This document shows, piece by piece, positions 5,387-55,341 of a DNA stretch of 64,000 bases. The position numbers and the translations under genes are program-made. The stretch's first letter is position 1; every line of letters starts with the position of its first letter. The stretch spans positions 620,001-684,000 of the forward strand of contig MCFH01000005.1 in assembly GCA_002104945.1 (NCBI GenBank), read 5' to 3'. Below the pieces are notes generated by a model. It saw only the letters and a program-made list of their open reading frames with translations. It did no database searches and was not told the origin of the DNA. Source of the DNA: Piromyces finnis finn (taxonomy: Eukaryota; Fungi; Neocallimastigomycota).

Positions 5387-8300
5387 CTATTTATTACAAA
5401 TGATTTGAAGATCATTCATATCATTAAGATTGTCGGAATCATAACGATTTGAAGAATTATTAGTTTTATTATAAATATTATTAATATCATCATTATTAAT
5501 ATTGCTATTATTCATTCTATTCATAACAACTGGTGGATGATAATGAATTGATCTCTCATCATTTTCACTGCCGTAATTTAATGGAGTTAAACTTGTAGGT
5601 GTTTTAACATCAAATGAAGACATAGCTGATATAGGTGTTACATTTAAAGAAGTACTGTTATAATTTTTATCGTTTCCCATGTAAATACCTTTATCAATTC
5701 TTGACATTTCAAAATTACTTAAACTTCTACATCTATTATGTGAAATGAGTTGGTTTATATAGGTTCCATTTGTTGGTGCAGTGGTAGCAGAATTAGGTTT
5801 TATAAAAGGATTTGTATTGATATGTGTTTGAATTTGTACTTTTGAATTAATTTTGGAATTTTGTTGTTGTTGATAAGCTAATGGTTCATTAACATTCAAT
5901 TTCGAATGAGGTGAAATCATCATTGTATTCTTGGAATATGGATTTCCTGAAGAAGATGCTGATGTTGGTGTATGAACAGGTGTAGCATAAACATTTTCTA
6001 ATGTAGATGGATTTGTATTAATTGTTAATGAGGTTAATGGTGCAACTTGTTGATAAAGATATCTATTTGGAAGTTTACTTGAATTTTGTTTTGAATGTAT
6101 TTCAGAATATGGAGAAGGAATTTGTTGATTAGTCATTCCAGGGTTTTGATTTTGATTTGCTGGATAATGTTTTGACGGTGTTTGAAGATATGATGGCTTA
6201 ATAGGCAATTGAGTATTATAATTTGAAGTTGTTGGCATATAGTTTGATGAACTTGAAACATTGGATTCTAATGCTTGATTTCTTGGTAGAGTATTTGATT
6301 TTGTAATGGTTGACGGTATATTTAGATCTAAGGGTGTAAGTGATGATAAATTAGTTGAATTATAATAAGATGTATTCTTATTCTGGTTACACTTTGTGGA
6401 ATTAGCAAGGGAGGATAGTGATGGAGTAGATCTGTTCCTATTTAATGAATAAAAGAGATTAGCCTTTTGAGAGTTATTTCTATCAATTCTATTAATGTTA
6501 CTATAATACTGAGTATGTGAATGATTAGATAGATCATCGGTTGAGGTATGATTCTGTAATCTGTTACTAATATCTTCTGGAGTATGGTGTATAATATTAT
6601 TTGAAACATATTGTGTAGTATTATTTGAAGATAATAATCTTGAATCTGGATTAGAATAATCATTTGTATTCATTATATCAATACCATAAGAAACACTTTC
6701 ACCAATTGAACATTCTTTTGATCCTTCTTGATATGAAATAGATTCTGGTTCATTATATTTCTTTTTACCGCTAATTGATGGTAAAAATGATTTTGGTTTA
6801 GATATAAATTGATAAAGGGATGGAATAACACTTTGAATAACATTTTGCATACTATTGCTTCTTGAAGGCTTATTTTTTTGGAATGAATCTTTCATTTCTT
6901 GATTTTGAATATCATAATTTTCTTCTTGAGAATTAAAACTTGCCATTGAGTTATTATTCTCTTCAGTAACTGTTGTATATTTTACAGTTTGAATATTTCC
7001 ATTATTATATAATAATGGTTTTGGTGGAAGACTAATAGTTCTGCTTTTTTGTATTTTACCAGAAATAAAGGATCCATTATTATCATTATTTTTTGATTTT
7101 TCAAGTGGCGCATTAAATAAATCGATAAGTTCTTTTCTTTCTCTTTCAAATTGACTCTGACTTTTACTTAATTTTATATTTTTATTAGAAGCATGATCAT
7201 CATTATAATCAATGAATTCAGTACCTGGTATTTTTTTAATTTCATTCTTCAAATTACTTTTGGGTGAATATAAATCAGTAAAAGTGAGTTGGTTCTTTAA
7301 TCCTGAAACTCTGGAAGTAGATGAAGATCTTTTTAACGAACTTTTTAATGGCATTGTATTTAGATCATGATGAACATTTGAATACTTCATTTGCTCTTCA
7401 TTATCATGATGATGAATGCGATCATGTTTTTCTATCTTTTGTTTAGTAACTTGGAACAAGTCACTCGGAGAATCGATGGATGTTAATTTTATAGGTCTCT
7501 TTTTCTCTTCCATTATTGTTGATTCTTCATTACCTTTTAATAATTCATTATTGATGTTATTTTTGTTATTATTATTATCATTATTAATGTTATTTTTGTT
7601 ATTATTGTTATCCTTATTATTGTTGTTTTTGTTGTTGTTGGTAGTATCTAATATCATTCTACCGTTATTAGCATCATTTTGAGAATGAATATGAGATGAT
7701 AAGGAATCATTTTTATTTAATGGTTTATTTAAAACTTCTGGTTTTTTAAAATCTGGTAATACATCATGATTAATGCTTTTTGTTTTTGGAACAACAAATG
7801 GTTTGGTTTTTGGTGATTTATTTATTTTTTGCTTTCTTTGTTGTTCTTTTTCCTTTGCTTCATGATTTTTAGCCTGATTTTTAGTTTCCTGTCTTTTTTC
7901 CAAAAGTTCATTTACTTTTTGACTCAAATCAATTTTTGAAGAAAGAATTGGACTAATGAAATTAATTCTATCAGTAATGTATTTTTCCAACTCATCTAAT
8001 TCTTGCTTGTCAATAGTATGATTATATTTCATTTCACCTCCAGAAATACTTCTACTCTTATTACTAAATTTACTATATTTCTTATCAAGTTTAGTAACAA
8101 GAGATGAATCAAACTCAAGATTATCGAAAAAGTTATTCATGGGAGCAAAATACATACTATAAGTCTTAATATTAGGGGATTGATTTTCATCTACTTCATC
8201 TTCTTTAATAGTACTAATCTTTTTAAATGCGGTTTCTAAAGCATTTTCAAGCTTAAATGATTGCTTTGGTTCATTTTTATTACTCGCTTTTTGTTCTGAA

Positions 8301-11300
8301 CGATCCTTAATTTTTAATGGATCATGATCTTCGTCACTAATATCATTGAAAAGAGAATGTGCATTCTTATCATTATCCTTATGAATGAGATTACCTTCAG
8401 AATCAAATAAAAGATCATCGTCAACAACATTAGAATCGGATTGCAACTCATTACTTTTAACTTTAGAAAATAATAATGAAAGAGGCTTAAATGAGTTTGG
8501 TAATATTGGATCCAATGGTTTAGGCTTTGGCTTATGTAAATTAATAGCAAATGGTGATTCAAATTTATTAGAATCCAATAAAGATTTATTATCTTTATCA
8601 TTAGAAGATTCCTTTTTATTTTCAGTATGGTTTACTTTTGCCTTGATTTCAAGTGGTTTAGATTCTTTGATATCGGTAGGCTTTGCATCTTGGCGAATTT
8701 TATTCAATGCTTGTACTTCATTATTTAACTTTGTATTTTTTATATTATCTTTATTTTCATCAGAGTAATCTTCCTTGGAGGCGTTTCTTGCTGCGGATAC
8801 TAAATAATGTAAATTTCTTGTGGAATATTTCTTTTGAATTACATTAATTTCCTTCATTAACTCTTCGGAATATTTTGGTGATTCCATTAGTAATGACTCA
8901 GACATTCCATTAAGTGTGGAATCACTCATTAATGAATGATTATCTTTTTCTGTAATTTTTTCAGTATCTTTACTCATAATTCCACTACTTTCAATTTGAT
9001 CTTTTAAACTTGAAACTTGTCTTTCTACCTTTTTAACATTCTTTGAAATATCTTCTTTTTCAAACTTAAGTGAAGTTGTACTACCACTACTAACATCACT
9101 ATCCTTATTCCTATTATAATATTTATCCATATAAAGCTTAACATTCTCATTTGTAGTATTTGTTCTTCTATGTTCTAAATTACTTCTAAAACTAGTAGAT
9201 AATTTGATACTATTAATACAACTATTTCTAATGGATTTTTTACTAATTTGACTAAGATTATCTAAGGAATTTTTGTATTCTTCACCTTCCATTGAAGGTT
9301 GATTATGATGATGATAGTAAAATTTATTATTATGAATATATGTTCCTTTTTTAATATCAATAGCTTTTGATTCTTCTGAGGCACTAGTTTTTGTAGTAAA
9401 TGATGCTTTATTCTGTGATTCTTTTGATACTTCAGATTTTGCCTCCATAGCTGAATTATTTTTATTATTATCTTTATTTGAATTATCTACAGAAGTTGAT
9501 AAATCTTCATTAGAATAATTGCTTAAATTATATATTGTATTATTTTGACTAAAATGAGTGTGATCATTACTTTTATTTATATTAGATCCAATTGCCTCTA
9601 TAGGTTTTACCGAAGCTTCATGATTAGAAATCATTTGAGCTTTTGTTTGTGGAGGAATAATACTACTTCCATTAATTTCAGTTGGTAATGATACTAATGG
9701 TTGAGCAGTTTGACTAGACAAAGACATTTCATTCCATGTCTTTATTAAATTATTATTTACAAAGTTATCTATTGCTTTATTAGATGAATAAATATAATCT
9801 TTACCAATTGGTACAATAGGTACTTTTTCATTAACTGCTGTTGTTAAAGTAGTCATCATTGTTGTTGTTGTTATAATAGTCGAAACAACATTTGTTGATT
9901 TACTAATTGAAGATGTTGTTGTAGAAGTTAGAGAAGATACATTTGAATAATAATTAGGAATTGGTACTGATATTCTATTATTATCCAGATTATCCTGTTG
10001 TAATTGTTGTTGTAACTGCTTTTGGAAATGTTTTTGTAATTGTTGCTGTAATTTTTGTTGCAACTGTTGTTGTTGTTGTCGTAATTGTTGTTGTTGTAAT
10101 TGTTGTTGTTGTAATTGTTGCTGTTGTAATTGTTGTTGTTGTAATTGTTGTTGTTGTAATTGTTGTTGTTGTAATTGTTGTTGTTGTAATTGTTGTTGTT
10201 GTAATTGTTGTTGTTGTAATTGTTGTTGTTGTTGTAATTGTTGTTGTTGTTGTAATTGTTGTTGTTGTTGTAATTGTTGTTGTTGTTGTAATTGTTGTTG
10301 TAATTGCTGTTGTTGTTGCAATAATTTCCGTAACTCTTGAATTTGAATATGACTTGGAAGTTCTGGGTTAATTTTATATTGTTGTAATTGTTGATATAAC
10401 AAATTATTTTGAGTATCATTTACATTATTATCTGTATCATTATTTCTGTTTTGTAAAGAATTAATACTTAATTGGTTGATAAGATGAAGTATATTATTGA
10501 AATTTTCTATTCTATTGTTATCCAACGTATTTTGAGATGGTATATTAGTATTATAATAATCATTATGATTATCAATCACAGATGCTGAATTAATAGAATG
10601 GTCATTATTAGTAGTTGTATTAGTAGTTGTCGTCGAAGTAGATGCATGATAATTATTTAATTGTTGATGTAATTGTTGTTGTAAATGTTGTCTTTGTTGT
10701 TGTAACAATTGTTGTTGTTGTTGAAGTGTATTATTCTGATAATTGGTATAATCTTGCATAACTTTAGATGCCGGAATGACAACCTTCTCATATTGTTTTG
10801 AAATTATAGAATTTGTACCGTTAATATTATTCATAGCAATATTGTTTTGATTACTTTGATCAGAAATTTCATCTTTTTCTTGTATATCTGGTACCGATGG
10901 TTTAACTGAATGATAAGTTGGATAAATTGATGTTGAAGATATGCTTTCAAAATGTAACCAATCCATATACCATTCTAATTGACGTACCCAAAAGTTAAAA
11001 TTTTCTGCAGAAATCCAAACGTTATAATTTAAAGCTTTCAAGACAACTGTTTCTAAATAATTAATTTCATCAATTGGAAGTTCAGTTAAATCTTTTGCCC
11101 AAGTAATATTACGATAAGAATTATCTAAATAAACCTTATTACAAATTAATAAACAAACAAGCCAGACTTTGTATATGGATGAAAGTTTATTAAAGTATTG
11201 AGGTAATTTTGATCTCAAAATATAAAAAAAGTACAATGACATCACTGTCACCGACGTAGGTATACCAGTATGATATAAGGTATAATGAATGAATTTTCTA

Positions 11301-11740
11301 AATTCTACATATTTTTTCAAAATTGCTTTTGCATAAACAGTAATATTAACATCCTTTGGCATATCCATATTGTTATTCAAATGTATAAATAAACATACAA
11401 AATTGGACATCGTCGATACACTAAAATTCATCAGACATCTTGACGAATTAATTTTTGATTGATGATAATGAAGATGATATGATGCAGCACATTCTATATT
11501 TTCAACCACATTTGTTTCTACTATATTCATTTCTTTGTTAACTCTATTTTCAGTGAATAATTTTATAATTTCTTGAGTTGATGCTTTAATTTTATTTTTA
11601 ATATCATCATAATTTGAATGTTTATTTACAGCATCAATTTTACCGACTTCAACACTTTTATTTATTTCGTAATCTTTATTTTTCAATGCTTCATTAAGCA
11701 ATATATTGATCTGATTTTCAGTATTATTCTCTACAATCAT
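5387..11740 (-). CDS. Pho80/Pcl-family cyclin-box protein, 2117 aa, single exon, with polyQ and a long low-complexity C-terminus
   Basis: An N-terminal cyclin fold (GIPTSVTVMSLYF...YKVWLVCLLICNKVYLDNSYRNITWA...EINYLETVVLKALNYNVWIS) matches the Pcl/Pho80 pattern. The remainder is N/Q/S/K-rich. Confidence 0.75.
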   Translation of the reverse strand: MIVENNTENQINILLNEALKNKDYEINKSVEVGKIDAVNKHSNYDDIKNKIKASTQEIIKLFTENRVNKEMNIVETNVVENIECAASYHLHYHQSKINSSRCLMNFSVSTMSNFVCLFIHLNNNMDMPKDVNITVYAKAILKKYVEFRKFIHYTLYHTGIPTSVTVMSLYFFYILRSKLPQYFNKLSSIYKVWLVCLLICNKVYLDNSYRNITWAKDLTELPIDEINYLETVVLKALNYNVWISAENFNFWVRQLEWYMDWLHFESISSTSIYPTYHSVKPSVPDIQEKDEISDQSNQNNIAMNNINGTNSIISKQYEKVVIPASKVMQDYTNYQNNTLQQQQQLLQQQRQHLQQQLHQQLNNYHASTSTTTTNTTTNNDHSINSASVIDNHNDYYNTNIPSQNTLDNNRIENFNNILHLINQLSINSLQNRNNDTDNNVNDTQNNLLYQQLQQYKINPELPSHIQIQELRKLLQQQQQLQQQLQQQQQLQQQQQLQQQQQLQQQQQLQQQQLQQQQLQQQQLQQQQLQQQQLQQQQLQQQQLQQQQLQQQQLRQQQQQLQQKLQQQLQKHFQKQLQQQLQQDNLDNNRISVPIPNYYSNVSSLTSTTTSSISKSTNVVSTIITTTTMMTTLTTAVNEKVPIVPIGKDYIYSSNKAIDNFVNNNLIKTWNEMSLSSQTAQPLVSLPTEINGSSIIPPQTKAQMISNHEASVKPIEAIGSNINKSNDHTHFSQNNTIYNLSNYSNEDLSTSVDNSNKDNNKNNSAMEAKSEVSKESQNKASFTTKTSASEESKAIDIKKGTYIHNNKFYYHHHNQPSMEGEEYKNSLDNLSQISKKSIRNSCINSIKLSTSFRSNLEHRRTNTTNENVKLYMDKYYNRNKDSDVSSGSTTSLKFEKEDISKNVKKVERQVSSLKDQIESSGIMSKDTEKITEKDNHSLMSDSTLNGMSESLLMESPKYSEELMKEINVIQKKYSTRNLHYLVSAARNASKEDYSDENKDNIKNTKLNNEVQALNKIRQDAKPTDIKESKPLEIKAKVNHTENKKESSNDKDNKSLLDSNKFESPFAINLHKPKPKPLDPILPNSFKPLSLLFSKVKSNELQSDSNVVDDDLLFDSEGNLIHKDNDKNAHSLFNDISDEDHDPLKIKDRSEQKASNKNEPKQSFKLENALETAFKKISTIKEDEVDENQSPNIKTYSMYFAPMNNFFDNLEFDSSLVTKLDKKYSKFSNKSRSISGGEMKYNHTIDKQELDELEKYITDRINFISPILSSKIDLSQKVNELLEKRQETKNQAKNHEAKEKEQQRKQKINKSPKTKPFVVPKTKSINHDVLPDFKKPEVLNKPLNKNDSLSSHIHSQNDANNGRMILDTTNNNKNNNNKDNNNNKNNINNDNNNNKNNINNELLKGNEESTIMEEKKRPIKLTSIDSPSDLFQVTKQKIEKHDRIHHHDNEEQMKYSNVHHDLNTMPLKSSLKRSSSTSRVSGLKNQLTFTDLYSPKSNLKNEIKKIPGTEFIDYNDDHASNKNIKLSKSQSQFERERKELIDLFNAPLEKSKNNDNNGSFISGKIQKSRTISLPPKPLLYNNGNIQTVKYTTVTEENNNSMASFNSQEENYDIQNQEMKDSFQKNKPSRSNSMQNVIQSVIPSLYQFISKPKSFLPSISGKKKYNEPESISYQEGSKECSIGESVSYGIDIMNTNDYSNPDSRLLSSNNTTQYVSNNIIHHTPEDISNRLQNHTSTDDLSNHSHTQYYSNINRIDRNNSQKANLFYSLNRNRSTPSLSSLANSTKCNQNKNTSYYNSTNLSSLTPLDLNIPSTITKSNTLPRNQALESNVSSSSNYMPTTSNYNTQLPIKPSYLQTPSKHYPANQNQNPGMTNQQIPSPYSEIHSKQNSSKLPNRYLYQQVAPLTSLTINTNPSTLENVYATPVHTPTSASSSGNPYSKNTMMISPHSKLNVNEPLAYQQQQNSKINSKVQIQTHINTNPFIKPNSATTAPTNGTYINQLISHNRCRSLSNFEMSRIDKGIYMGNDKNYNSTSLNVTPISAMSSFDVKTPTSLTPLNYGSENDERSIHYHPPVVMNRMNNSNINNDDINNIYNKTNNSSNRYDSDNLNDMNDLQIICNK
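10003..10320 (-). repeat. Coding polyglutamine minisatellite, (LQQQQ)n / (LQQQQQ)n
   Basis: The plus strand reads ttgttgttgttgtaa repeated (TTA CAA CAA CAA CAA on the minus strand), in 15- and 18-nt units. Confidence 0.95.
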
Positions 11741-26997: not shown

Positions 26998-28580
26998 TTA
27001 AATAAACTTAGCACCTTTTTCTAACAGAAACATTGCAACTTTATTTTTATTTTCTTCTAATAAAATTCTTGTAATTGTTTTATTATCTTTTTTTATATTT
27101 ATATCTGCTTTATTTTCGACAAGAATTTCAACAATTTCCATATTTGGATCTTTATTCTCGCAAACAATCAATAAAGGCGTTTTCCCATCATTATCTGTTA
27201 TATTGACATCAGCTCCTTTTTCAATTAATGATATTACTTTATCTACATTATTATCCCTACATGCTTTTATTATAGGTGGTACATCCAATGCATTTAATAA
27301 TTGTATTATATTTGTATTTTTATTTTTATTTGCATAGAATAATGGGGTATAACCAAATTTATCCTTAAAATCATAATTTGCACCACATTCAATTAAATAT
27401 TTTACTATATTTTCATTGTCTTGTTTACATGCAAAATGTAATGGAGTATTGTTATTATTGTCATATACATTTATATTTATATCTTTAAAATGTTCAATTA
27501 AATATTTTACTATATTTTCATTACCCGTTTTACATTCATAATGTAATGCTGTAAGCCCATTTTTATCTCTTGTGTTGATATCAATATTTGGACGACCATT
27601 AATAATGAAATATTTAACTAAATTTTCATCATTCATCTTGCAAGCTTCGATTAAATTATTATTTATTGTTTTTTCGCTTATAAATGTTTCTTTTTTCCAA
27701 AAGTCACACAATATTTGTTTGTCTAATTTCATGGTAAGTCTTTTTAATACTGCAAATTTAAATAAATCTTCGCCTAGTTTTTCCTTCATATCCATAATCT
27801 TTTTTGCAATATTTCTTTTTGCATTACTACTCTCTATTTCAGCGAATTCATCGAATATAACTTCCTTCCCTGAAAAGTCTTTTACAATCATACACATTTT
27901 TCCATTTATTATCCTTTACATTAATAATTTAAATAATTTAAAAAATAATAAATAATTAATAATAAATAATCATTATTCATTATATATATATATATATGAT
28001 AATTAATATTTATATTTATACTTTTTTTTTTTTTTTCATTATATTAATTTAAATAAAAAACTTACTCAAATAATACTTTTTGGTTTCCAACAATTTCTAT
28101 ATTTCCTTGTTTATTCTTATTTTCCTTTAAAATATGCTGGATTAATTCAATACAATCATTAATAACTTTAAATTTATTCTTTCCTTCTTCAACAATTTTA
28201 TACAATTTGTCTTTTAATATTTCGAATAATTCAATATTCGTCTTACCGAAATGATATTTATTATCTATTAATATTGATCCAATTAATGCTTCAAAAATTT
28301 CTGATAAATATTTTGGATAATTTTCATTATTATTTGATTGTTTTACTTTTTTATATTCATGACTTATTCTCTTCTCAACCTTCATTTTTTCTATAATATC
28401 TAGACTAGCAAATAATTTAGCATAACTATTTTTTGATACAGCCATATGTTTATATTCAGTTAATTCTTTTGGCTTTGCAGTAACTCTAGTACTATAGTAA
28501 TAAATAACGGTAATTAAGTCGAGAACTGCTTCACCTACAAATTTTAAACGCTTACAACTAAAACAATAGTAATAGTAGTA

Positions 28581-28619
<39 letters not shown>

Positions 28620-31600
28620 GTAATATATAAATTATTTTTAAAAGAAAATTATTATTATTATTTTTTTTTAATCATAATTAATATTTATTATTATGTTATT
28701 ATACTTACTCACTGAGGGAGTATTTTGAATACATCTCTTTATTATAATTAATAATGGTAAACATTGATGAATTTTCTATAAATTTATGACCTAAAGTCTC
28801 TGAAACAAACTTCATGTTTTTTCTATTGACTTTAATTATACTTTTATTTATACTAGAAGGTTGCCATTTCCAATGATCAGAAAAAATATTTTTGGTACGA
28901 ATTAAAAACAATTTACTTAATTTTATTCCTTCTTCTAATGCCTTTGCTCTATCTTTTCTATATAGAGGAGGCATTTCTTTACATATATTTTCAATTGAAA
29001 ACATTATATTCCCATTCTTATATGATTTAATACCATCTTCAAAGCAAGCACCGACTAAAGCTTCATAAAAATCTGCTATAGATTTATCATCCTTATTCTT
29101 CAAAATGGGTTTTTTATCCAAATCACCAATGGTTTGTTTCATATCATAATTTGGAGGGCAAAAGTTTTTCACAGAGTATCTTTGTTTAATAGAGTATTTT
29201 TTCCAACCTAACTTATTAATTTGTTCAATTAAAAATTCATTTTTAATAAAATCATTTCTTCTATGAATGAGAAGATCTTCATTTCGATTGAAATAACAAT
29301 TAAGAATATTAAGAGAAGTTAAATATTTCAATATAGAATCACCAAGTAGTTCTAATCTTTCATGTTGTTCCCCGACTACTGGATCAGCTGATTTTGACAT
29401 ACTTGCTCTATAAATACTTTCAAGAGTTAAATGTTTCAATCCAATGTTACATCTAAATTCATCCATAAAAGTTAATATTTTGATTTTATAAGTAAATATT
29501 GGAATCAAAGTAAGAAGTTTAATCCATGCTTGGGGAACTGTAATAACACAATATAATTCTGGTATATATAAATTCTTTTTTTCTCCATTTTCATCATTTT
29601 CATCGCGTTGAAGACTATGAATAAGAGAATGGGCATCATAAGAAAATAACGGTGAGTTTTTATATTTATATTGAAAATGATCATTTACTAACTCTTTATA
29701 TTTATCTTCAAAGAAATCTTGATACGTTGTTTCTTTCTTTTCTTCTGTTTTTTTATTTAATATAAACACATCTTCTTTTCTTGCTTTTCTATCCAATCCT
29801 GTAAAAAAACAAATAGTTTTATCAAATTTGTTAATTAAGTATACTTTCTTTAATGATTTCTCAATAATATTTTGTGTTTCTTCATCCATTTTTTCTATTT
29901 CATTATTTATATCGATTATTTTTTCTATATCTTGTACATTAATGATTTTTTTGTGAAATTCTTTTAAATAATAACAATTTTCTTCAAAAGTATTATTCTC
30001 ATAATGAATGTCTTTGTTTGATTTTTTTAAAAAATAGTTAGCATAGTAAATCCAATCCCCTAATGTGATAATATTTTCATTTTGTAAATTATTCATTGTT
30101 GTATTAATATTTTTCATTATATTCCAATTAATTTCAACAGTATTATTCTTTTTTGACATTGGTATAATATAGTACATTTCATTTAATTTCTCATTTTGTG
30201 AATTATTTGATTCGCTTGGTTGAAGATTATTATTCCCAAATAGCATTTTCCATGAATGAGTTTGAAAAGTTTTTATTGTTTCTAATTCATCGTCACTGAA
30301 ATATACGGGAAGATAAGATTGACAATCACTATTGTCCAAGATAGTATCATTTGAATAAAATTTATCGCCATCATTATTATTATGGTTTTTATTAAAAATA
30401 TCGTTACAACTATTAAAATTATTAGCTTGATTATTATATTTATTCCATAGTTTTAAATGAAATTTATATTTATCATTTTTGTATTCTCTAATTTCAATAA
30501 TAGGAGTATTGGAAGGTATTGGTTTCTTGGTAATATAACCAAGACAGAGTTTAATTTTATTTGGTTGCTCGTCTGTTTTATTAATATCAATATAACAGAA
30601 TAATTCTTTTGCGTCATCAATTTCATCATTTTCTAAATATGATACAAAAAATAAATTATTCGGATTATAAAAATTATCAGGATAAAATTCTTCATTTAAA
30701 ACCCACGAATCCTTGGAAAATACATCTGGACAATAAAATGATGATTCAATTGAGGGTGGTATACCGTGACATCTTAATCCTCTTCCTTCTATTACTGGTA
30801 ATTTAATATCACCGGAATGGTACAATAATTTAAATAATAATAAATTAGCTTCACACTCGGCTTCTTCCTTCGAAATACATAAAGGTCCAACAAATTTTTG
30901 AAATTTATCAGATATGAAATATCTATTTTCAAATTTTATTTCCATGAAATAAAGTATTTGTTTTTGGTTAATATTTTTATGTTCTACGGGATGACATATT
31001 ACTGCATTAATAAACTTTATTAAATCTGATGACATATTTTTCTCTCTATATTCAATGTATTTATTTAAATTACATTCATTTATTGTGGAACTACATTTCA
31101 TTCTATTAATATACTTTTTTTTAATGAAATCGTAAGATAATTTTAAACCATAATTACTTTGTACATAATAATCCTTAATATTGAAATCTTTGGAAATGTA
31201 GTTTGATACAATGTAATCTTGAAATTCATAATAAAATTTAATAGCATCATCTTGAAAAGAAATACAAATTATTTGACCAATATTTATTTTTTCTGTTGTT
31301 TCTAATTCTATTAATTCTTTTTTAATGTCTTTGTATATATCTTCAGAGATAATTAAAATTACATCCTTGTATTCTAAATCATCATTCTTTCTTGGAATAT
31401 ACTTTGATATAAAATCATCTTTAATTAAATTAATTAACATATACTTACAATTATTGCTATAAAATACATTCATTTTATAATTGTTATCAATTTTATTTAT
31501 TTTTAAGTTATAATAAAGATCTCCGTAAAATAAATAATATTCATTAAATAATAGTAAAAATGTTACTTGGTTAGGTTCACACTTTAAATATGATATAATT

Positions 31601-34600
31601 ATATTCTTTATTTGATTGAATTTTGAATTTTTCCTTTTTTCATTTTCATCCTTCATATAACAATTATATAGGTTATAAATTTTTAAAGTATTCAGTTTCT
31701 CATTATCAAAAAGTTCAACAGGGTTCATTTTAAAACTTGAGTATATAATATTACAAAAATAATTTATAGCTTTATTAATTTTCGAATGTTTCTTAAAATT
31801 TTTAATAAAAATTTTTACTATATCATATATATGTATGTAATTGTTATCAATTTCTTGGAGGCCCATTTTATTACTGTTAATATAATTATTTTTATCTTCA
31901 AGGAATTTTATGATATCATTTTTAAAATCTCCTGTTATATTATTTCTTATGGAGCTATTTTCATAATTCTTATATAAATAAAATAAACTTGTATTATCAG
32001 TCATATTCCAGTCTGACATTTTGTTGTAATTTTCTGAATCTGATATTTTATTACAATTTTCTTGTGAATATAATATTTTCTTTCCTGATTCAATTTCTGA
32101 TGATGATGATAATGAACAAATTGAATTTGATGTATATGAACTATAATCGAAAATATTTTGATTAGAACCATTATAATCATTGCCATATACATCTTCATCT
32201 ATTTTATTTTCTTGATCGCTATTTTCAGTTTCAGAAGTTAAACTGTTTGAATCAGAACTAATTTCTGAACTATTATTACTATCATTACTTTTATTTTCTA
32301 TTTTATTAACTAATGTTGCTTTACTAAATGAGCTAAAATCACTTCTAGTATCAATGTTTTCATTCTTACCTAATGTTGTTACATGACTGCTACTAACACA
32401 TTTAGTATCATTGTTGATACTTTCATTATTATATAAATTATCATTATCACTTTCATTGTCATCTTCATCTGTTTTATTTTCTTGATCGCTATTTTCAGTT
32501 TCAGAAGTTAAACTGTTTGAATCAGAACTAATTTCTGAACTATTATTACTATCATTACTTTTATTTTCTATTTTATTAACTAATGTTGCTTTACTAAATG
32601 TGCTAAAATCACTTCTAGTATCAATGTTTTCATTCTTACCTAATGTTGTTACATGACTGCTACTAACACTTTTAGTATCATTGTTGATGATTTTATTATC
32701 ATTAAACATTATTAAATCATTTAAAATACTTTGTGTTTCACTAAACCTAATACCATTTTTTGAATTTTTATTTTCATCATTATTATCAGCATTAGTAAAT
32801 TTTACTTCGATATTATTTACTGTTATTATTTCATCTTCTATTTTTTGGATATTATTGATTTCTGCACTGTCAGTAGCATCAAAAATATTACTTTCTATAT
32901 TATATAAATTATCATTATCACTTTCATTGTCATCTTCATCTGTATTATTTTCTTGATCGCTACTTTCAGTTTCAGAAGTGAAACTGTCTAAATCAGAATC
33001 AATTTCTAAATTAACATTATTAACCTTACTTTTATTTTTTATTTTTTCATTATTACTCATTCCTTTTTCATATAACATTTTTAATACCTTTTTATCTTTT
33101 GTATATTCTAATAAGAGAAGCTCTCCATTATTATTTCTTTCATTCAAATCTGCGCCACTATCACATAAAAATTTTATCATTTCTAAATTACCGTTTATAG
33201 CTGCATAGATAATAGGTGTATATCCATTCTCATCTTTCCAGTTGATATCAACATTAACATTTTTTTCCATTATGAAGTATTCTATAATAGCCAATCTATT
33301 TTGTTTGATGGATTCTATGAATGCTAAATTAAAATTAATATTTTTAACTTTATATAAATATTTTTTAATTTTATCACTATTTGAATTAACAACTTTAACT
33401 ATTAATGAGTTATCGCTGATTTCATTTACATCAAAATGAAATTCTTTTTGGTTGATTAAATAATCAATGAGGATGTAATTTTTTTCATCTATAGCTTTAC
33501 TTAATACAATATTGAAATTAGCATTATTGAAATTTTCTTTTTTATTTTCGTCTTTAATACTTAAAGATTTATATACATAGGATTTGACTAAAATTTCTAA
33601 AATAGCAATATTATTATCTTTATCACAAATTGCTTTAGAAAGAATTATTTCTTTGTTTGGATATTCATCTAGCGATATTATATTTAATATTCTATTTGTT
33701 AAATTTCTTTCTTTCTTTTCGACAGCTACACTAAGCAGATCATACATTAAAATTCTATCTTTAATTAGTAAAGGTGACTCATTATCAAGCAAAATAATTA
33801 TTCCATCTATATTGTCATTATTCATAGCTGTTTTATACATTTTTTCATCTATTTTTATTATATTATACTTGATTATTAATTGCTCTATTTTTTTATTTGA
33901 TATTAATGTCTTTTCATGGTACAATTCCAATAAATTCAAAATACCTTTTACATTATAATTAAATTTTTGAAATATTTTTTTTAAAATAGTATTACAACCA
34001 TTTTTTATTAATTCATGAATAAGCGTAAAATCTTTTGCTAACAAGTCCATATTTGAATTTATTTTTACTTTTTCATTTTTTTCTAATTTTTTGATAGTCG
34101 AAATATCATTTATTTTACAAGCATAATATAAAATTGTATTTCCATTAGAGTCTTTCTGATTAACATCAAAATAATCTATATTCTTTAATAAAAAATCAAA
34201 TATTCTGTTAAAACCATGATTATATGAAAGAGTCAAAGGTGTATTGCCATCACAATCTTCAATATTCTTCATATTAATATTATTCCTTATTCCATATTGA
34301 ACCAATAAATATACTATATCATTAAGATCTTGATTGATTGCTTCGATTAATGGGCAATTACCACTAGCATCCTTTTCAGTTATATCAATCTTATAATTTT
34401 TCTTACTGCTAAGAAAACTGTTAATTAATTTTATAATCTCATATCTTTTTTCTCTAATAGCTAAAGATAATAATGAAATACCATCTTTATTTCTAATATT
34501 TAAATTAGCACCATTATTATACAATGTTTTAAATATATCATAATTATTACTTATATTAAAAGCAACCATTAAAGGATACTCACCATCATTACCTTTTGTA

Positions 34601-37600
34601 TTAATGATAGATGCACCTTTTTCTATTATTAAATTTTCAATGAAAGTAATTCCCTTATTTAATTTAATTCCTTTAATTAATTCATCTGAGTTTATTTTTT
34701 TCGTAAAAGAACAGTCTTTACATTGAAAATAATCTAACATTTCATGATTATTTGGTGATATATAATTTATAACAGAGCTACCCTTATTATTCTTAATTTG
34801 AATTCTTCCACCATAGTTCATTAATAAATTTACGATAGATACATTTCCATAATAAACGGCATACATTAATGCTGAATTGTCATTTTTATCAACTAAATTA
34901 ACATCCATTCCTCTTTCTAAAAGTTGTTTTACTAAAAATATCTTTTCTGTTTCTTTGAATTTTTCTGATTTTATGATAGTTATTATTGAAGTTTCACCCC
35001 TTGAATTTAATTTATTTAAAACAATTATGTTACCAGATTTTAATAACAGGTTACATATTTCTATATTTTCTTTGTAGATAGCATTGTCTAAAGGAGAATC
35101 ACCAAAAGTATTCACTGAATTAACAATATTACCATCATTCATTAGATGTTTTATAATTTCTATGTCTTCACAGTCAATTGCATCAAAAATATTATTTTTT
35201 TTAGTTTCATTTTTATTTTCATAATTATCAATAATGTTTATTTGTTCTTCTTGTATTCCTTTGCATAAATGAAAATTTTTACTTGGCTTTGCACCTTTCA
35301 TTTTTAAACTGTATTGGATATCTAACTTTCCTAATTGAATGGCATAGTCAATAGGTACAAAACTATTACTATCGCATGCATTAATGTCCGCACCATTATC
35401 AATTAAATTACTAATAACGGTTAAATAATTCATAGAAATTGCATAGATTAATGCTGAATAGCCATTACTATCAATTAAATTGATATACTCTGAGCTAGAG
35501 AACCGTTTACTAAATACTTCTTTATTTTTAAGAGAATAATACTTTGATTTAATCATAGATATAAGTGTTGTCTCTCCTCTTGAATTTCTTTTATTGATAT
35601 GAATGTTCTTACTTTCCAGTAAAATTTCCAATAATTCAAAACTTTTTTCATTAAATATTGCGTAATCTAATACTGTATCATTTGAAGTATTTCTTAAATT
35701 AACATCAGCTCCTGCTGCTATTATATATTTGACAAATTCTATATCTTCATTTTCTATAATATAAAATAAAATACTTTTTCCTGATTTATCCTTTTGATTT
35801 ATATCAAAAGTACCGCGATTTAAGAAAAATTTAAATTTTTCTATAGAAGTTTTATATAAGTAAATTAATGGGGTATCACCATTACGATCAATAATACTCA
35901 TATCGATATTATTTTTTATACCGTAGTTGATCAATTTATTTGAATAATCAATAATTACATTATTTCTGAGAACTTCAAATAATGGACAGTCTCCTCCATA
36001 ATCACGTTCTATAATATTTATTTTGATATCAGGTTTAGACAACATATTTTCTATATTTTCATAACGACCATTTTGAATAGCTATTGACAATAAAGACACA
36101 CCATGATCAGTTTTAATATTACAATTAGCTTTTATATTTAACAAATAATCAAAAATTGTTAATTTCTTTTCGTTAAATGCTGTAAAAAGGGGATAGTCTT
36201 CTCCTATATCTTTAGCATTTATAATATAATTAGCTAAATACTTATTATTATTTATAAATTCCTCGACAGAAAATTTATCTGATTCTCTTATAAGTCTGTT
36301 TAATTCTTTTATTTTTTCAGATAGATTTATATAGAAAAGACTTTCTATTATATGCCTTATTTTATTATTTTTTGCATAATCAATAGCAGTTTTACTATCA
36401 TTATTTTGATAATAGACGTTAGCACCATTTTTAATCAATTTCTCTGCAATATTTGTATACCCATATTGTAGAGCATATATTAGTGCCGAGTTACCTTTTG
36501 AATCTGTTAGATTTACATTTGCGCCTTTTGCAATTAATAATTCTACAATAGATATATTATTACTTTCAATTGCTATAAATAATGGATATTTTCCATTAAT
36601 ATCTTCAATATTAATGATAAAAGGATTCGATTTAATTATATATTTTACTAAATCTATTCTATTAAATTGTATTGCCGAGTTTAACTCCATTATATTTAAA
36701 AATATTCTATTCATATCCATAATCCAATAAGGGTACTTATTATTATCAAAGTTTTTATTAGCTTTGATAATTGACCATATAATATCATTATTATTTTTTT
36801 CTATTGCTAAACTAAGTGCTGATTTTCTATTATTATTAATATGATAAAAGTATTCAAGTTTATTGACTTGAGTAATGATATTAATAATATATTTTGCTAC
36901 ATCAAATTTATTATTTTCAATCGAAAATAACAATGCATTATTTCTAAACTTTGAATCTTCATAATTCAACATCGAAATTATATCCTGTACAACATTCATT
37001 AATTTTTCAAATATTAAATAGTCCGATAAAATAGCTAAAAATAATGGTGATTCACCTTCTTTGTTTTCTATTGTAAGATATTCTAAAGCATAATATTCAC
37101 CTACAATTGTAGTAACACTATATATATCTTTATTCTTACATGAATAATGTAGAGCTGTATTATAAGACATATCTCGGGTATATAATTTTGATCCATGGTC
37201 TATTAATACTTTAACAATATCCGAATGACTATATTTAGATGCTACAATTAATGGAGTTAAACCTTTATTATTCTTGGTTTCTAGATATGCATTATGTTTA
37301 ATTAAATAGTTAACAATAGAAATATTATTATTTTCACATGCATATATTAAAGGGGTATTTTCATTATTGTCTGAAATATTAACATTACAATTTTCTAAGC
37401 ATTTAACAAATTGAATATCATAATTATTTTTACATATTATAATCAATAATGTTTCTCCTTGTTCATTTTGATAATCAACATTAAAACTTTTATCATGAAT
37501 ATATGTAGTAATATCATTAACTTTTCCACCATTATTTAATATTTTTATTATAGATTCAAATATATTCTTTGTTTTATTTTTTTCATTTTCTTCATCATCT

Positions 37601-38241
37601 TCACATTTACTTATAGATTCAAATACATTCTTTGTTTCATTTCTTTTATTCTTTTCATCATCTTCACATTTACTTTTATCTTCTTTGAAAGAAGAGTTAT
37701 TTAAATTAAAATTTTGTATATTACTATCTTCAACTTTTTCTTTTAATTTGTATAACTCATTTTTCATATTAAAATCATTATTATCAAATTTTAAAAAAAA
37801 AGCTGTATTATCCTTTTCATTATTAAAAAGTTTTATTGATTCTTCTTTAATACTGAAACAAGTTAATAATTCTGTTTTTAATTTTAAAAAATTTGGTGTT
37901 AATTCTTTATTTTTAAATATTGGAGAATTTGATATTATAATATAACTCTTTTGTTGTTCCCTTAAAATAGGATTTTTAAAGTATTCTAAATATTGTAAGA
38001 AGTCATCAATATAAAGAAAAATAAGTAATTTTGCTGAAATTTGATAGTTGGGATGATATTTTTTATATTCATCAATACGATAAAATTCTATATTGTCAAA
38101 TTCTTTTAATTCATCCAAATATATATATTCTTTTTGGAAATAACTATATATTATATGAATTTTGTTAAATTTTTTATAAATCCCTTTTATAAAATCTTTA
38201 CAATTATTTTCTTTAGTTATTATTAGAAAATTATAGTCCAT
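26998..38241 (-). CDS. Ankyrin-repeat/Dicer-like fusion protein; 3 exons (38241-28709, 28557-28066, 27913-26998), predicted 3646 aa
   Basis: Both track ORF stops overlap GA|GTAAGT donors (28708, 28065). The phase-2 acceptors ttttag|T (28557) and aag|G (27913) restore frame, giving 10941 nt = 3647 codons. Domains seen: about 30 ANK repeats (about 37480-33050), a DUF283-like segment (GPLCISKEEAECEANLLLFKLLYHSGDI), a PAZ-like segment (TTYQDFFEDKY...LYIPELYCV), RNase IIIa (ERLELLGDS...IADFYEALVGA), RNase IIIb (KRLKFVGEAVLD...LSEIFEALIGSI), a dsRBD-like segment (SSNAKRNIAKKIM) and about 7 C-terminal ANK repeats. Confidence 0.88.
32190..32700 (-). repeat. In-frame tandem duplication, 270-nt (90-aa) period, within the Dicer-fusion ORF
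   Basis: The string atcagaactaatttctgaactattattactatcattac occurs at 32251 and 32521, and the peptide SSSHVTTLGKNENIDTRSDFS...SETENSDQENK occurs twice. A partial third copy lies near 32900-32990. Confidence 0.95.
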
Positions 38242-38638: not shown

Positions 38639-38926
38639 TTATGGACATATATTTTTATTTATATATCTTATAATTATATTGTGAAATAAATTTAATAAAT
38701 AATTTTATTAATAAGGTTAACAAAGAGAAAATGTTACATATAAGTATTACAGTTATATAAGAGGAGGTAGTAAAAATAATGAAAGGGTTATAGGACATAT
38801 TTAAATTATTTTATTAAAAAAAATGTTTTATTATCAAGATAAATTAAAATATTGTATTAAGGCAAGTTTTGTTTTCTTAGAGAATTAGTATTGTAACAAC
38901 CCGAAAGACTCAGACTAAAACAATAC

Positions 38927-39007
38927 TGTCGTTTTAGTTTTTATCCTGGTTGTTAAAGCGTTTCCTTAGCATGCATAAGGCTTCTGGTTCGACCCCGCAG
39001 ATGTCAG
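38927..39007 (+). other. Degenerate tRNA-like cloverleaf (pseudo-tRNA or SINE head)
   Basis: B-box GGTTCGACCCC at 38986-38996; a 5-bp stem with 7-nt loop CCTTA-GCATGCA-TAAGG at 38964-38980; a D-stem-like GTTT/AAGC around TGG; TGTCGTT (38927) pairs 6/7, with wobbles, to GATGTCA (39000). Loop sizes are non-canonical and there is an internal T5 run. Confidence 0.45.
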
Positions 39008-39340
39008 TGCCTGTGGATTTTCCACTGGGTTTGCCATGGGTTGGGTTATGATATTCAGGTAAGTACTAATTTGTACTAATGAACTTTCTAATTTACTACT
39101 ATAATAATAACACTCGTCTAGCCGGCCTGAGAGGGTCAAGTCTACATGGTACATTCCAAATTAGAATTTAATAAGTGGTGACTTAGGCTATACCAAAAAC
39201 ATACAATATTCCTTAATCAATGTAAGTGTAATCATTAGGGGGCGGTTGATATGTGATAAAGTTAACTATAAGAGGCTTAGAATTATAATTGGGAAATATC
39301 GTACAACGACATGCATCTAATGTACATGGATTATGAAAGC

Positions 39341-39492
39341 GAGCGTCGAAGCTGAAGATACAGTATGATAGACCAGGTGGGTCACAACCACCTAGCAATA
39401 GGAATGAGCCAACGTTTCTCTAAGAACCACCATTGGGGCTAACTATGATTGATGGGAGAAATGCACTCAGAAATTAAAAAAAAAAAAAAAAA
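39341..39492 (+). mobile_element. Poly(A)-tailed non-LTR retroelement 3' end, copy 1
   Basis: About 135 nt highly similar to 41043-41178, followed by a poly(A) run. It shares gctgaaga(t/a)acag...ccagg(t/a)ggg with the end of the LINE ORF at about 50500-50525. Confidence 0.8.
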
Positions 39493-40898
39493 CACAATTA
39501 ATTAACTAATTATATTGTATATTTTATTAATACTATATTATTTAATATTATTAATACAAATTAACCTAGTTCCAATTTGTATCATGTTGGTACAGGATTT
39601 TTATATATTATGTACCTTTTAATTTTTTTTGTAATGGGATAATACAACAATTAATAATAATAAATTTATATTCTAGATGAATAATTATTAAATAAGAATA
39701 TTTATAAATAATAAATATAAATAGTTGATGCGTTGACCGATATATTTTTGAATAATATAATGTTTTTAATAAATAATAAATTCTATATTATTATAATGAA
39801 ACAATAAATCTAAAATAAAATAAAATATGTTTTATAATTAACAAATAAATCACTCAAAATTCAAAAATAAACTCTTATTATGTTTTAAATTAAATCTTTA
39901 TTATATTTTATAATTTATTTATTATCTATTTGTTTTTTTTTTTTTTTATTCTCTATTTATTGTCCGATTTTTATGAAAAAGAATTTTATCTTCCTTTTAT
40001 ACATTTTCATTTATTACATGTATTATTATTAACTATTAAATATTATTATTATTATTACTATCGTTATTATTTATTAAAATTAAAAGAATAAATTAAAATT
40101 ATGTCTTTGTATTATAAAATATTATAGAATATTACTTATTTGATTTTCTTATTACTTCATAACGTTTAAACTTAGAAAAATTATTATAAATTATCATTGA
40201 CTATCATTAAATGTATAATACCTTGAATAAAATAATTAAAATTTAAAATTAAAATAATATTAAAATAAAATTAAAATAAAATAAAAATATAACAAAATTA
40301 AAATATTAAATGTATCAATTATTATAAACACTCATTTTATACAGAAACATAAAAAGAGTTCTGTATTTTATCTTTAGAATTGTTATTATTGTTCTATTTC
40401 CAGGTTTTAAGTTTATCATTTTTAGTAATAATTACTCAATTAGTTATTTATTAATTTATAAGTTTAAAAGAATTTCTAAAGAACACTTGGATAAAACACT
40501 AGAATTAATAATTTGATGTTTACCATTTATTTTTAGTTTATTTATTCATTTTTATTTATTTATTATTATTTTATTATTTTAATACATTATTGGATTAAGT
40601 CGTTTTATTTATTTAATAATTTATTTCATTATTATCACTATTAGGTCGTTTTTACTCAGAATTTATTATATAATAAAGAGAATATTATTTATTTAAGAAA
40701 GGGTTATATTTTCATAAAATTATTATTCATTCATTTTTAAGGGTTATTATCGTTTATTTTTATTATAAGTTACTATGGGTTAAGTCGTGTTTATTCAGTT
40801 AGTTTTTATTATGTTTTTATGTGAGTAGCGTATCATAGTTTTAAAATTCATGTAAATTTAGTCTTTAGAATTAGTATTAAGGTTAGGAAAATGATTTT

Positions 40899-49449: not shown

Positions 49450-50630
49450 GTGAAGAAAGGAGTTCGTCAAGGTTGCCCACTTTCACTTATTCATTTTAAT
49501 TTCTTTATTAATGATATTTTTAAAGAGTGCGAAGATCTCGGAGTCATTCAATGCTGTGGTGGACTTTTTGCAGATGAAATAGTTATTTGTACTATTTGTA
49601 CTCAATCAAGAAGATACTTAAAAAAAATGCTAAAAAGAGTTAATAAATGGGCTTTGTATAATGAAATGAAATTTGGTATACAGAAATGTTCAATGAAGGT
49701 TATTCGTCCTGAATCAGTAGAAAATCAGAGCAAGAAAGATCTTAAAGGAAATTCAATCAAAGCGCAATATTATGATGATAATAAATTTATTGAAACTAAA
49801 GATTTTATCAAATTATGTTATGAGTACCCAGAGTTTGCCTATGGTTTCTACTGGCTGTTGAAAGCAAGAAGTGGATACAAGTTGGATGCTAGAATTGCAA
49901 AAGCTGCTAAATTTGTTGATCCGGTTTGTCCTAACTACTGTCCGTGTTGCAAGAGTAGTGATCAAAATATTAAGTATTGGTTATTAGATTGTCCAACTTT
50001 TAGAGATATCCGTATTAAACATTACAATTACATAGTCCAACTATTAAATTTTTTTAGTCAACGTAATTCCAACAATCCTATCAATTATAATGAAAATGTT
50101 AATATCAGTAGAGATAGCAATAATAATAATAGTAATAGTAACATTAATAATAATTTTAATAATAGTAGTAATAACAATAGTGAAGATAATAATTCTAATT
50201 TAGATAGTAATTTAGTTAATAATAGTAATAGTTCTAATAATCCGGTGAATATTAATGTGTATTCTAGTGTGGGTAATAAAATATTTAAATTCCTTCTTGG
50301 AGGAAGAAGTTTTAACAATATCAATTATAATTCAAGGGAATGGAAAGAACTTTGCATGTGTCAGATTCAATCTGGTACTTACGAAGGAACACCATTCTTG
50401 ACAGTAACAGCGGAACTTCTAACCAAAATCATGCTTTTTGCTATTGGCCAGCAATGGTCAATGTTCAAAAGGTTTGAAGCAACATCCAAGAATATCAATG
50501 CTGAAGAAACAGGCCAGGAGGGCCAGCGCAACCAATGGAGATCATAATTTTGTCCTATGATAAAATTTTGATCTTTGGCTTGGAAGTCAAATACAATTAT
50601 CATTATACTTTAGTATAATAGTGGCTTTCT
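49450..50630 (+). mobile_element. Non-LTR (LINE) retrotransposon remnant: RT core fragment, internal deletion, C-terminal Cys-rich knuckle, 3' UTR
   Basis: KGVRQGCPLS (RT motif) and LFADEIV (degenerate F/YADD), then an abrupt jump to CPNYCPCCKSSDQNIKYWLLDC, with an Asn-rich insert. Confidence 0.88.
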
Positions 50631-54597: not shown

Positions 54598-55341
54598 TCA
54601 ATTAACAACGCCTACTTCTTGAGAGCTTTTAGTAGTTTTAGATTTAAATAATTTATTGAATGAAAAAATCTTACCAGAGTGGTGAATTTCACCACTACCT
54701 TTAGATTTATTTGTTGCACTTTTCTTTAAGCTTTCATTAGAACGACGTTCCTTATCCCTTTTACTCTTAATTAAGCTAAACTTAGAGGTCTTCTTATTGT
54801 ACTGACCTCTCTTATATTTATCTAAGAAATCTAATTGATTTGTGTTGAATGCTCCTCTACGATAACGTCTGATATGTTCAACGGCTTGTAATGGCTTCAT
54901 ACCAGCTTCAATTAAAGCAATAGCCACAAGAACAGGAGCACGACCTAAACCAGCTACACAATGCACAGCAATAGTTGGATTTTCAGTGTTCATTTCTTCG
55001 TTAACATTTTGTTCCTTTCTAATTTGCTGTAATGAACCAAACTTCTTTTCAACTAAATTGAGCCAATTATTAACAACATTGGCTGGTGGAACAGCACCAT
55101 CACGGAATTGCCAATCATGAACATTAATATTATTATCGGATAATAATATAGTACTATAGGTTGGTTCACAAACTCTAACAATGTCTGAAACTCTGTTTCT
55201 TTTAAACTCTCTTAAATATTGTGGGAGTGTATTATCAGTTGGGCAATCCAAGATTAAAAAATTCATATTTTTATAGGAAATGAAAGATAAAATCTTGGAT
55301 AATGGAATACTTGACATCTTATAAGAAGCTTGAATTGACAT
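54598..55341 (-). CDS. PTP4A: PRL/PTP4A-type protein tyrosine phosphatase, 247 aa
   Basis: FLILDCPTDNTL, VRVCEPTY (regulatory Cys), DWQFRDGAVPP (WPD-type loop), HCVAGLGRAPVLVAIALIE (PRL P-loop), RRGAFN. Confidence 0.9.
   Translation of the reverse strand: MSIQASYKMSSIPLSKILSFISYKNMNFLILDCPTDNTLPQYLREFKRNRVSDIVRVCEPTYSTILLSDNNINVHDWQFRDGAVPPANVVNNWLNLVEKKFGSLQQIRKEQNVNEEMNTENPTIAVHCVAGLGRAPVLVAIALIEAGMKPLQAVEHIRRYRRGAFNTNQLDFLDKYKRGQYNKKTSKFSLIKSKRDKERRSNESLKKSATNKSKGSGEIHHSGKIFSFNKLFKSKTTKSSQEVGVVN

Follow-up and report, generated by a model that had tools for sequence, protein, structure and literature searches.

The window analysed here, a 64,000-nucleotide stretch of the anaerobic gut fungus Piromyces finnis (contig MCFH01000005.1, positions 620,001 to 684,000), carries on its minus strand a giant gene at 26998-38241, whose 3,646-residue product combines a Dicer core with arrays of ankyrin (ANK) repeats. 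Dicers usually have the architecture helicase-DUF283-PAZ-RNase IIIa/b-dsRBD (double-stranded RNA binding domain), with few minimal exceptions; the N-terminal DExD/H helicase is present in most of them and absent in some, e.g. in the Dicer of Giardia. We propose that the P. finnis gene encodes an expressed, highly derived member of the Dicer family, which would cut by RNase IIIa only and in which an ANK scaffold would have assumed the role of the helicase. The probability of this reading is estimated at about 0.7.

An earlier note on this DNA, made from the sequence alone, had proposed that three open reading frames (ORFs) join through two phase-2 introns with GA|GTAAGT donors into one 3646-aa frame, and the frame, the donors and the RNA junctions all agree with it. 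The ORF list contains the minus-strand ORFs 28705-38241 (3178 aa), 28062-28445 and 26998-27897, and the joined exons 28709-38241, 28066-28557 and 26998-27913 give 10,941 nt, encoding 3,646 amino acids (aa) with one terminal stop. Exon 1 has 9,533 nt (3x3177+2) and exon 2 has 492 nt, which places both introns in phase 2; both have the donor GA|GTAAGT and end in AG. The main ANK array and the core as far as RNase IIIa lie, as claimed, in the uninterrupted exon 1. The GC content of the window is ~20%, a composition at which stops make up roughly a tenth of random codons, and a 3,178-codon frame is therefore not a chance product (p ~1e-139 by our own arithmetic).

The locus is present in four RNA runs from three studies. 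RNA contigs were aligned to exon 2 plus ~25 nt of intron on each side, and in all four runs they break at 28557, with an overhang TCACTGAGGGAG... identical to the plus-strand sequence from 28709, and at 28065, with an overhang ...CCATTTATTAT that corresponds to exon 3 from 27912 downward. Both introns (28558-28708 and 27914-28065) are therefore excised exactly as predicted; the one-base ambiguity at the exon 3 junction is due to the G with which both the intron and exon 3 begin. A single 4,201-nt RNA contig runs from exon 3 through exon 2 and 2.7 kb into exon 1. In the best run (X1), 86% of the words sampled from the 3' half of the gene are present and 90% of those from the 5' half, which takes in the N-terminal region, ANK array and linker. 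Lack of expression had been named beforehand as a finding that would speak against the prediction; instead, RNA contigs derive from both gene halves, and a giant Dicer-family gene is real and expressed in an anaerobic gut fungus.

The gene is organized as follows, with the boundaries of the core domains carried over to the P. finnis protein from a structural model of the core of its Neocallimastix lanati orthologue.

26998-38241, minus strand: whole coding region, three exons, 3,646 aa (ORFs, spliced frame, RNA contigs).
28709-38241, minus strand: exon 1, 9,533 nt, aa 1-3177 plus 2 nt of codon 3178 (uninterrupted ORF; donor at 28709/28708 confirmed by the RNA overhang at 28557).
37822-38241, minus strand: N-terminal conserved domain, aa 1-140, predicted alpha/beta (conserved in the homologues P0001 and P0003).
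33142-37467, minus strand: main ANK array, aa 259-1700, at least 20 repeats (Pfam Ank_2, iterated repeat hidden Markov model, HMM).
32017-33096, minus strand: acidic, Ser/Asn-rich low-complexity linker, aa 1716-2075 (translation, repeats, poor conservation).
31171-32016, minus strand: conserved segment ahead of DUF283, aa 2076-2357, first helical and then alpha/beta (48-64% identity to P0001).
30817-31170, minus strand: DUF283-like segment (Dicer dimerisation, dsRBD fold), aa 2358-2475 (hhalign, homologue model).
29854-30660, minus strand: platform domain with an insertion, aa 2528-2796 (hhalign).
29536-29841, minus strand: PAZ domain, aa 2801-2902 (hhalign, HMM profile, fold match).
29443-29532, minus strand: connector helix, aa 2904-2933, motif IPELYxVxxVPQAWIKLLxLIP (phmmer and profile alignment to DCL3 and Dcr-1, hhalign).
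28786-29424, minus strand: RNase IIIa, aa 2940-3152, with E2964, D2968, D3057 and E3060 (Pfam, hhalign, motif table).
28110-28767, minus strand: RNase IIIb, aa 3159-3327, split by intron 1, with K3183, E3187, E3264 and E3267 (Pfam, alignments).
28558-28708, minus strand: intron 1, phase 2, GT..AG, with a (TAA)n run at 28582-28619 (sequence and RNA).
28066-28557, minus strand: exon 2, 492 nt, most of RNase IIIb and the start of the dsRBD-like segment (Pfam 1.5e-14; both boundaries in four RNA runs).
27721-28169, minus strand: dsRBD-like tail, aa 3308-3406, split by intron 2 (topology of the homologue model, structural alignments).
27914-28065, minus strand: intron 2, phase 2, GT..AG (sequence and RNA; same GA|GTAAGT donor in the related contigs L001 and L002).
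26998-27913, minus strand: exon 3, remainder of the dsRBD-like segment, C-terminal ANK array and stop (sequence, Pfam, RNA).
27091-27654, minus strand: C-terminal ANK array, aa 3429-3616, six repeats (Pfam, repeat HMM).

The C-terminal third of the protein is a collinear Dicer core composed of DUF283-like, platform, PAZ, connector, RNase IIIa and RNase IIIb segments and a dsRBD-like tail. Two tandem RNase III domains are found in one polypeptide and joined in RNA: Pfam PF00636 (Ribonuclease_3) matches aa 2961-3069 (4.6e-14) and exon 2 (1.5e-14), and each domain aligns best with its own Dicer counterpart by hhalign. The best sequence match in PDB is Arabidopsis DCL3, with an alignment that reaches upstream of RNase IIIa into the Dicer-specific connector PEL..vP.a..k...lP. 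When a five-member family profile was compared with DCL3, the domain E-value was 7e-9 (DCL3 929-1110) and the alignment began at ITYxxFFxxKY...PL...aHsLi, a motif typical of the C-terminal end of PAZ domains in Dicers. A canonical Dicer profile was built from 67 full-length sequences obtained in a search of 1.84 billion representatives, with domain coordinates assigned via Pfam, and the whole core aligns with it collinearly (hhalign, E 1.8e-53). Because greedy alignment can bridge non-homologous stretches, each segment was also compared separately with the whole canonical profile. Every significant match fell on the expected Dicer domain and in the correct order, and reversed controls all gave E > 0.07. 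The E-values were 9e-26 for RNase IIIa, 1.3e-19 for RNase IIIb, 2.4e-15 for the connector, 3.9e-6 for the platform and 1.1e-4 for PAZ (to canonical 874-975; Pfam PAZ span 869-975), so that PAZ, platform and connector helix are all found upstream of RNase IIIa. The DUF283-like segment matched canonical 642-688 (Pfam Dicer_dimer 611-697) at E 1.9e-4 with a probability of only 47%, its reversed control giving E 0.45. As leads only, a search of a language-model atlas with RNase IIIa removed from the query retrieved Dicer_dimer, Dicer_platform and PAZ clusters (0.72-0.79), with the DUF283-like segment scoring 0.76-0.79 to the Dicer_dimer clusters.

For structural comparison, residues 2170-3239 of the N. 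lanati orthologue (P0159), a complete and naturally spliced core that is 52% identical to the P. finnis protein over 1,028 positions, were modelled with AlphaFold from an alignment of 36 sequences including 27 canonical Dicers. The model has a predicted local distance difference test score (pLDDT) of 80 and a predicted template modelling score (pTM) of 0.80. Its top 29 Foldseek matches are all Dicers (E down to 4e-21), and Drosha and Giardia Dicer rank lower. The fold of this homologue lends further support to the platform, PAZ and connector assignments. The DUF283-like segment is confidently modelled, yet lies beyond the rigid-body structural alignments. The tail after RNase IIIb is folded as alpha-beta-beta-beta-alpha (pLDDT 69-85), and structural alignments to full-length Dicers reach model residue ~1047, paired with mouse Dicer residue 1910, which presumably falls in the mouse C-terminal dsRBD. 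The tail gave no Pfam dsrm or hhalign signal, and a PDB search with the tail alone returned only serum albumin, which is noise; from the topology of the model and the extent of the structural alignments, it is described here as dsRBD-like.

The two nuclease centres differ. All four acidic metal ligands of an RNase III domain are intact in IIIa (E2964, D2968, D3057 and E3060, in the motifs HERLELLGD and ADFYEAL), and these residues are invariant in the P. finnis protein and in P0001, P0002, P0003, P0004, P0005, P0006 and P0008. RNase IIIb has the motifs KRLKFVGE and SEIFEAL, in which K3183, E3187, E3264 and E3267 occupy the positions of human DICER1 E1705, D1709, D1810 and E1813, as judged against human IIIb (QRLEFLGD) and bacterial RNase III. 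Three of the four positions are altered and the E1813 equivalent is kept; the second site of this Dicer-family member is therefore atypical. The altered pattern occurs in every giant member examined (P. finnis, the metagenome contig L001, Anaeromyces robustus and Neocallimastix), whereas IIIb of a short Piromyces paralogue has the canonical LEFLGD and ADLFEV, which makes the change a derived one, specific to the giant clade and conserved within it. E. coli RNase III is inactive even with the D45E replacement. Judging from these residues, RNase IIIb of the giant protein is quite probably dead or strongly impaired.

An alternative is a fully competent dicing enzyme, in which IIIb with Glu in place of Asp would still bind Mg2+, both strands would be cut, and the ANK repeats would add only localisation or partner binding. 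Three of the four IIIb positions are indeed still acidic (E3187, E3264 and E3267), and the conservation of the domain with its altered motif across genera implies purifying selection on it. We nevertheless consider this alternative unlikely. The equivalent of E1705 is Lys in every giant member, and the short paralogue keeps E/D/D/E, so the shift is specific to the giant clade and not a neutral drift common to gut-fungal Dicers. Moreover, the four equivalent IIIb residues of DICER1 are metal ligands, a change in any of which lowers IIIb activity, and E1705K and D1709E are among its recorded hotspot variants (PMC3503615).

The place of the helicase is taken by a 140-aa N-terminal domain, at least 20 ANK repeats, a fast-evolving acidic linker and a conserved 280-aa segment, none of which is recognisably a helicase. 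Pfam Ank_2 matches exon 1 in 16 stretches (E 7e-107) and exon 3 (E 1.2e-39), and an iterated repeat HMM places at least 20 ANK repeats in the main array (aa 259-1700), 6 in the C-terminal one (aa 3429-3616) and none within the Dicer core. The tandem 33-residue repeats that define ankyrin proteins are thus present (20 + 6), and the counts of about 30 and about 7 given in the earlier note can be retained as plausible upper figures for arrays that are themselves well supported. The placement of ANK repeats on both sides of the core holds for the P. finnis protein; as a family trait it does not, since the C-terminal array is also found in L001, where it is longer, and the Neocallimastix proteins and the A. 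robustus gene model lack it. This array is an addition of the sub-lineage of P. finnis. In the linker, a 270-nt tandem duplication (32155-32694, 92% identical) is accompanied by a third partial copy at 32874-33045, and this acidic, Ser-rich region is growing through recent duplications that keep the reading frame. In the Neocallimastix orthologue, a much larger and unrelated acidic repeat block is located ahead of the ANK array instead. ANK-bearing families are broadly expanded in Neocallimastigomycota (PMC8778642), and the fusion may therefore reflect the abundance of ANK repeats as much as a special function.

Two conserved segments flank the main array and the linker. The N-terminal domain (aa 1-140), of which three distinct sequences are known, is 27-37% identical to P0001 and P0003, with invariant DDF and SPI motifs, and had no match in Pfam, PDB, the atlas, hhalign, NCBIfam, PADLOC or a word-indexed search. 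The segment before DUF283 (aa 2076-2357), 48-64% identical to P0001, had no significant PDB sequence or profile match and no match in NCBIfam or PADLOC. The ANK array could alternatively have been inserted into a degenerate, split Dicer helicase, with aa 1-140 as a remnant of Hel1 and aa 2076-2357 as a remnant of Hel2i and Hel2; LYIDDF is then compared with DECH, and SNSP with TASP. Such an origin would be compatible with the preferred reading of the remaining protein. It is suggested by the position of the two domains, the first at the very N-terminus and the second immediately ahead of DUF283, by the best local hhalign match of the N-terminal domain, a non-significant one in which IIISNSPIF lines up with the end of the DEAD domain under two framings of the template, and by alternating strands and helices at aa 2225-2350 in a model of the P. 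finnis core (pLDDT 38). The direct comparisons are negative and make this origin rather improbable. Pfam gave no match to DEAD, ResIII or Helicase_C at E<=10, hhalign of the Dicer helicase with the three candidate segments gave E 0.28-0.95, and in column-shuffle permutations 9/40, 20/40 and 17/40 shuffles equalled or beat the real scores, while the unrelated PAZ segment outscored the candidate against Hel2. Searching the atlas by features, with the N-terminal domain or aa 2076-2405 as the query, returned noise (best score 0.48), and the N-terminal domain, with ~140 aa, is far smaller than a RecA1 lobe.

The protein was searched against the 1.84 billion representatives, among which only 7 score below 1e-30, all of them in this family. 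On these sequences the family is confined to Neocallimastigomycota (Neocallimastix, Anaeromyces, Piromyces and metagenomes), which bears out the earlier claim of a lineage-specific Dicer-family protein. Named members are KAG4088200.1 of N. lanati (3,239 aa), KAL6628106.1 of Neocallimastix sp. 'constans' (3,244 aa), a fragment from N. californiae and BCR32DRAFT_250662 of A. robustus, the model of which is cut by a contig edge. Public labels are all hypothetical, except that one JGI entry was automatically named 'ankyrin repeat protein/dsRNA-specific ribonuclease'. The earlier note knew of no described ANK-Dicer architecture, and this holds in part: literature searches found no published description of it, but the same layout is already public in hypothetical Neocallimastix and Anaeromyces proteins, and the sequence family is therefore not new, only undescribed.

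The closest relative is the metagenome contig L001 (65-68% identical, same three-exon layout). The Neocallimastix genes are without intron 1 and keep intron 2, and their proteins end directly after the dsRBD-like tail. In the Neocallimastix-type contig L002 (12974-14090), IIIa and IIIb lie in one ORF without intron 1, and intron 2 has the same GA|GTAAGT donor. Intron 1 has thus been gained or lost within the family. The nearest canonical Dicers by sequence are those of chytrids, at E 2e-15 and weaker. In a quick maximum likelihood (ML) tree the giant forms and the short forms of gut fungi make up two sister clades (support 100 and 98), which share a very long branch adjoining the chytrid Dicers, and the branch of the giant protein has a length of 2.29 changes per column. 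The giant Dicer descends from fungal, chytrid-like Dicers, and its form dates from a duplication within the phylum, of which the short paralogue, apparently without ANK repeats, is the other product. In Piromyces sp. E2 (KZ150849.1) the short paralogue is located at 5026-8576 of our extract L005, where assembly gaps interrupt the locus; the public model OUM64878.1 seems to omit an upstream DUF283-like exon (ORF 5026-5625). Genomes of gut fungi were reported to encode Argonaute and 1-4 Dicer copies and no RNA-dependent RNA polymerase (RdRP), in a study that does not treat the domain structure of the Dicers (PMC5796279).

The following scheme for the giant protein would be consistent with these observations. 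The platform and PAZ would bind the end of double-stranded RNA (dsRNA) and set the cutting distance, and RNase IIIa and IIIb would form the usual intramolecular pseudo-dimer. Only the metal site of IIIa would be competent, IIIb (K, E, E, E) being kept as a structural partner; by itself, the enzyme would then be expected to cleave chiefly a single strand, the one assigned to IIIa, and completing the cleavage of the duplex would need a partner or a second molecule. In animal Dicers the helicase with its Hel2i insertion docks partners, and the ANK arrays may act as protein-docking scaffolds that take over this partner-binding and regulatory role. Because the short paralogue left by the duplication has a canonical IIIb, the two forms may share the labour. 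A more specific version, in which the protein is a natural one-sited 'nickase' Dicer whose giant ANK scaffold replaces the helicase, or is inserted in its remnants, and selects both partner and substrate, is offered tentatively and seems doubtful as a whole. If true, a nickase Dicer would provide a small-RNA route in RdRP-less anaerobic fungi, with an ANK-docked partner or the short paralogue completing or redirecting the processing. A function in pattern recognition, or as an antiviral or anti-transposon effector, with activation via protein partners, is conjecture.

It is very improbable that the protein is a non-catalytic pseudo-Dicer scaffold, which would bind dsRNA or small RNAs and tether them to ANK-bound partners with no cutting. 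One nuclease site is already degenerate, and by mass the protein is mostly scaffold; the invariance of all four IIIa catalytic residues in all members examined argues the other way. An assembly or annotation artefact fusing an ANK gene with a Dicer gene can practically be dismissed, given the single 9.5-kb ORF spanning ANK through RNase IIIa, the same layout in independent Neocallimastix assemblies (two species) and metagenome contigs, the RNA contigs over both gene halves with exact splice junctions, and the contig edge that accounts for the truncation in A. robustus.

Several points weigh against the proposal of an IIIa-only, ANK-docked Dicer. Even at E<=10, Pfam has no match to PAZ, Dicer_dimer, dsrm or helicase in the P. 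finnis protein and three homologues. From the domain matches expected in the earlier note, Ank and two Ribonuclease_3 were thus obtained and Dicer_dimer, PAZ and dsrm were not; its DUF283- and PAZ-like segments are recovered by hhalign, together with the platform, and its dsRBD-like segment by model topology and alignment extent only. The confident structural model is that of a homologue, and since canonical Dicers were included in its input alignment it would be pulled toward the Dicer fold; the hhalign results are the evidence of Dicer homology independent of it. The AlphaFold model of the P. finnis core itself (aa 2076-3178, 5 sequences) has a pLDDT of 38 and was left out of the fold searches. 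A very degenerate RecA-like fold may escape detection by sequence. The replacement of D by E is conservative and Lys near a metal site is sometimes tolerated, so that IIIb may keep some activity. The tree comes from a quick ML search that was not completed, and the composition test fails for AT-biased rows. Finally, every mechanistic step beyond membership in the Dicer family is one that we infer from the sequence.

Canonical fungal Dicers, such as KAI8917804.1 of Powellomyces hirtus and Dicer-like protein 1 of Entomophthora muscae, have the same collinear order of DUF283, platform, PAZ, connector, IIIa and IIIb. They comprise 1,300-2,100 aa with Pfam DEAD and Helicase_C and no ANK repeats, whereas the P. 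finnis protein has 3,646 aa, no detectable helicase, ~26 ANK repeats and an altered IIIb metal site. The short paralogue (OUM64878.1, P0006) shares with it a divergent core of DUF283-like, platform, PAZ and RNase III domains at 30-35% identity, but apparently lacks the ANK repeats and the N-terminal part; an unrelated CBM10 gene lies ~1.1 kb upstream of it, with an assembly gap in between. Giardia intestinalis Dicer (PDB 2ffl) is much smaller, ~750 aa without DUF283, dsRBD or ANK repeats, and both of its nuclease sites are active. Drosha (PDB 5b16, 6v5b) ranks under the Dicers by both sequence and fold, has no ANK repeats and has both sites active. At the positions of the human DICER1 hotspots (E1705K, D1709E/N/G, D1810x and E1813x), IIIb of P. 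finnis naturally has K at E1705 and E at D1709 and D1810; the hotspots are somatic disease variants of a canonical Dicer, whereas in the giant paralogue this state is fixed across genera. RNase L, in which N-terminal ANK repeats control a nuclease, illustrates by analogy only that ANK arrays can regulate an RNase; it differs in its unrelated KEN domain, in its small-molecule activator 2-5A and in its occurrence in vertebrates.

Against this background, the giant family appears as a whole-phylum exception, with more than twice the usual size, an unrecognisable helicase, protein-docking repeats flanking the nuclease and a second catalytic site fixed in a state resembling human DICER1 tumour hotspot variants. 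If the asymmetry of the two sites is true, these fungi would offer a natural system for studying the products of a one-sited Dicer and the replacement of a helicase by partner binding. The finding also bears on the RNA interference tools under development for anaerobic gut fungi.

Rfam and tRNA scans across the window found nothing. About 600 nt upstream of the start codon of the Dicer gene lies a GC-richer island (38850-39500, 29-38% against 10-18% in the flanks). It contains no long ORF, Rfam family or tRNA; candidate identities are a repeat, a non-coding RNA and a promoter-proximal element. A second giant ORF of 2,117 aa at 5387-11740 on the minus strand has as its sole Pfam match Cyclin PF08613 (E 6.9e-5), near the N-terminus. 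On the plus strand, an ORF at 49450-50547 with a partial reverse transcriptase domain (RVT_1, E 2e-9) is probably a retroelement remnant. Two other minus-strand ORFs encode a protein-tyrosine or dual-specificity phosphatase catalytic domain (54598-55341, E 4e-6) and the middle of condensin subunit 2 (2007-2576; Cnd2, E 3e-18), the latter presumably being one exon of a larger gene.

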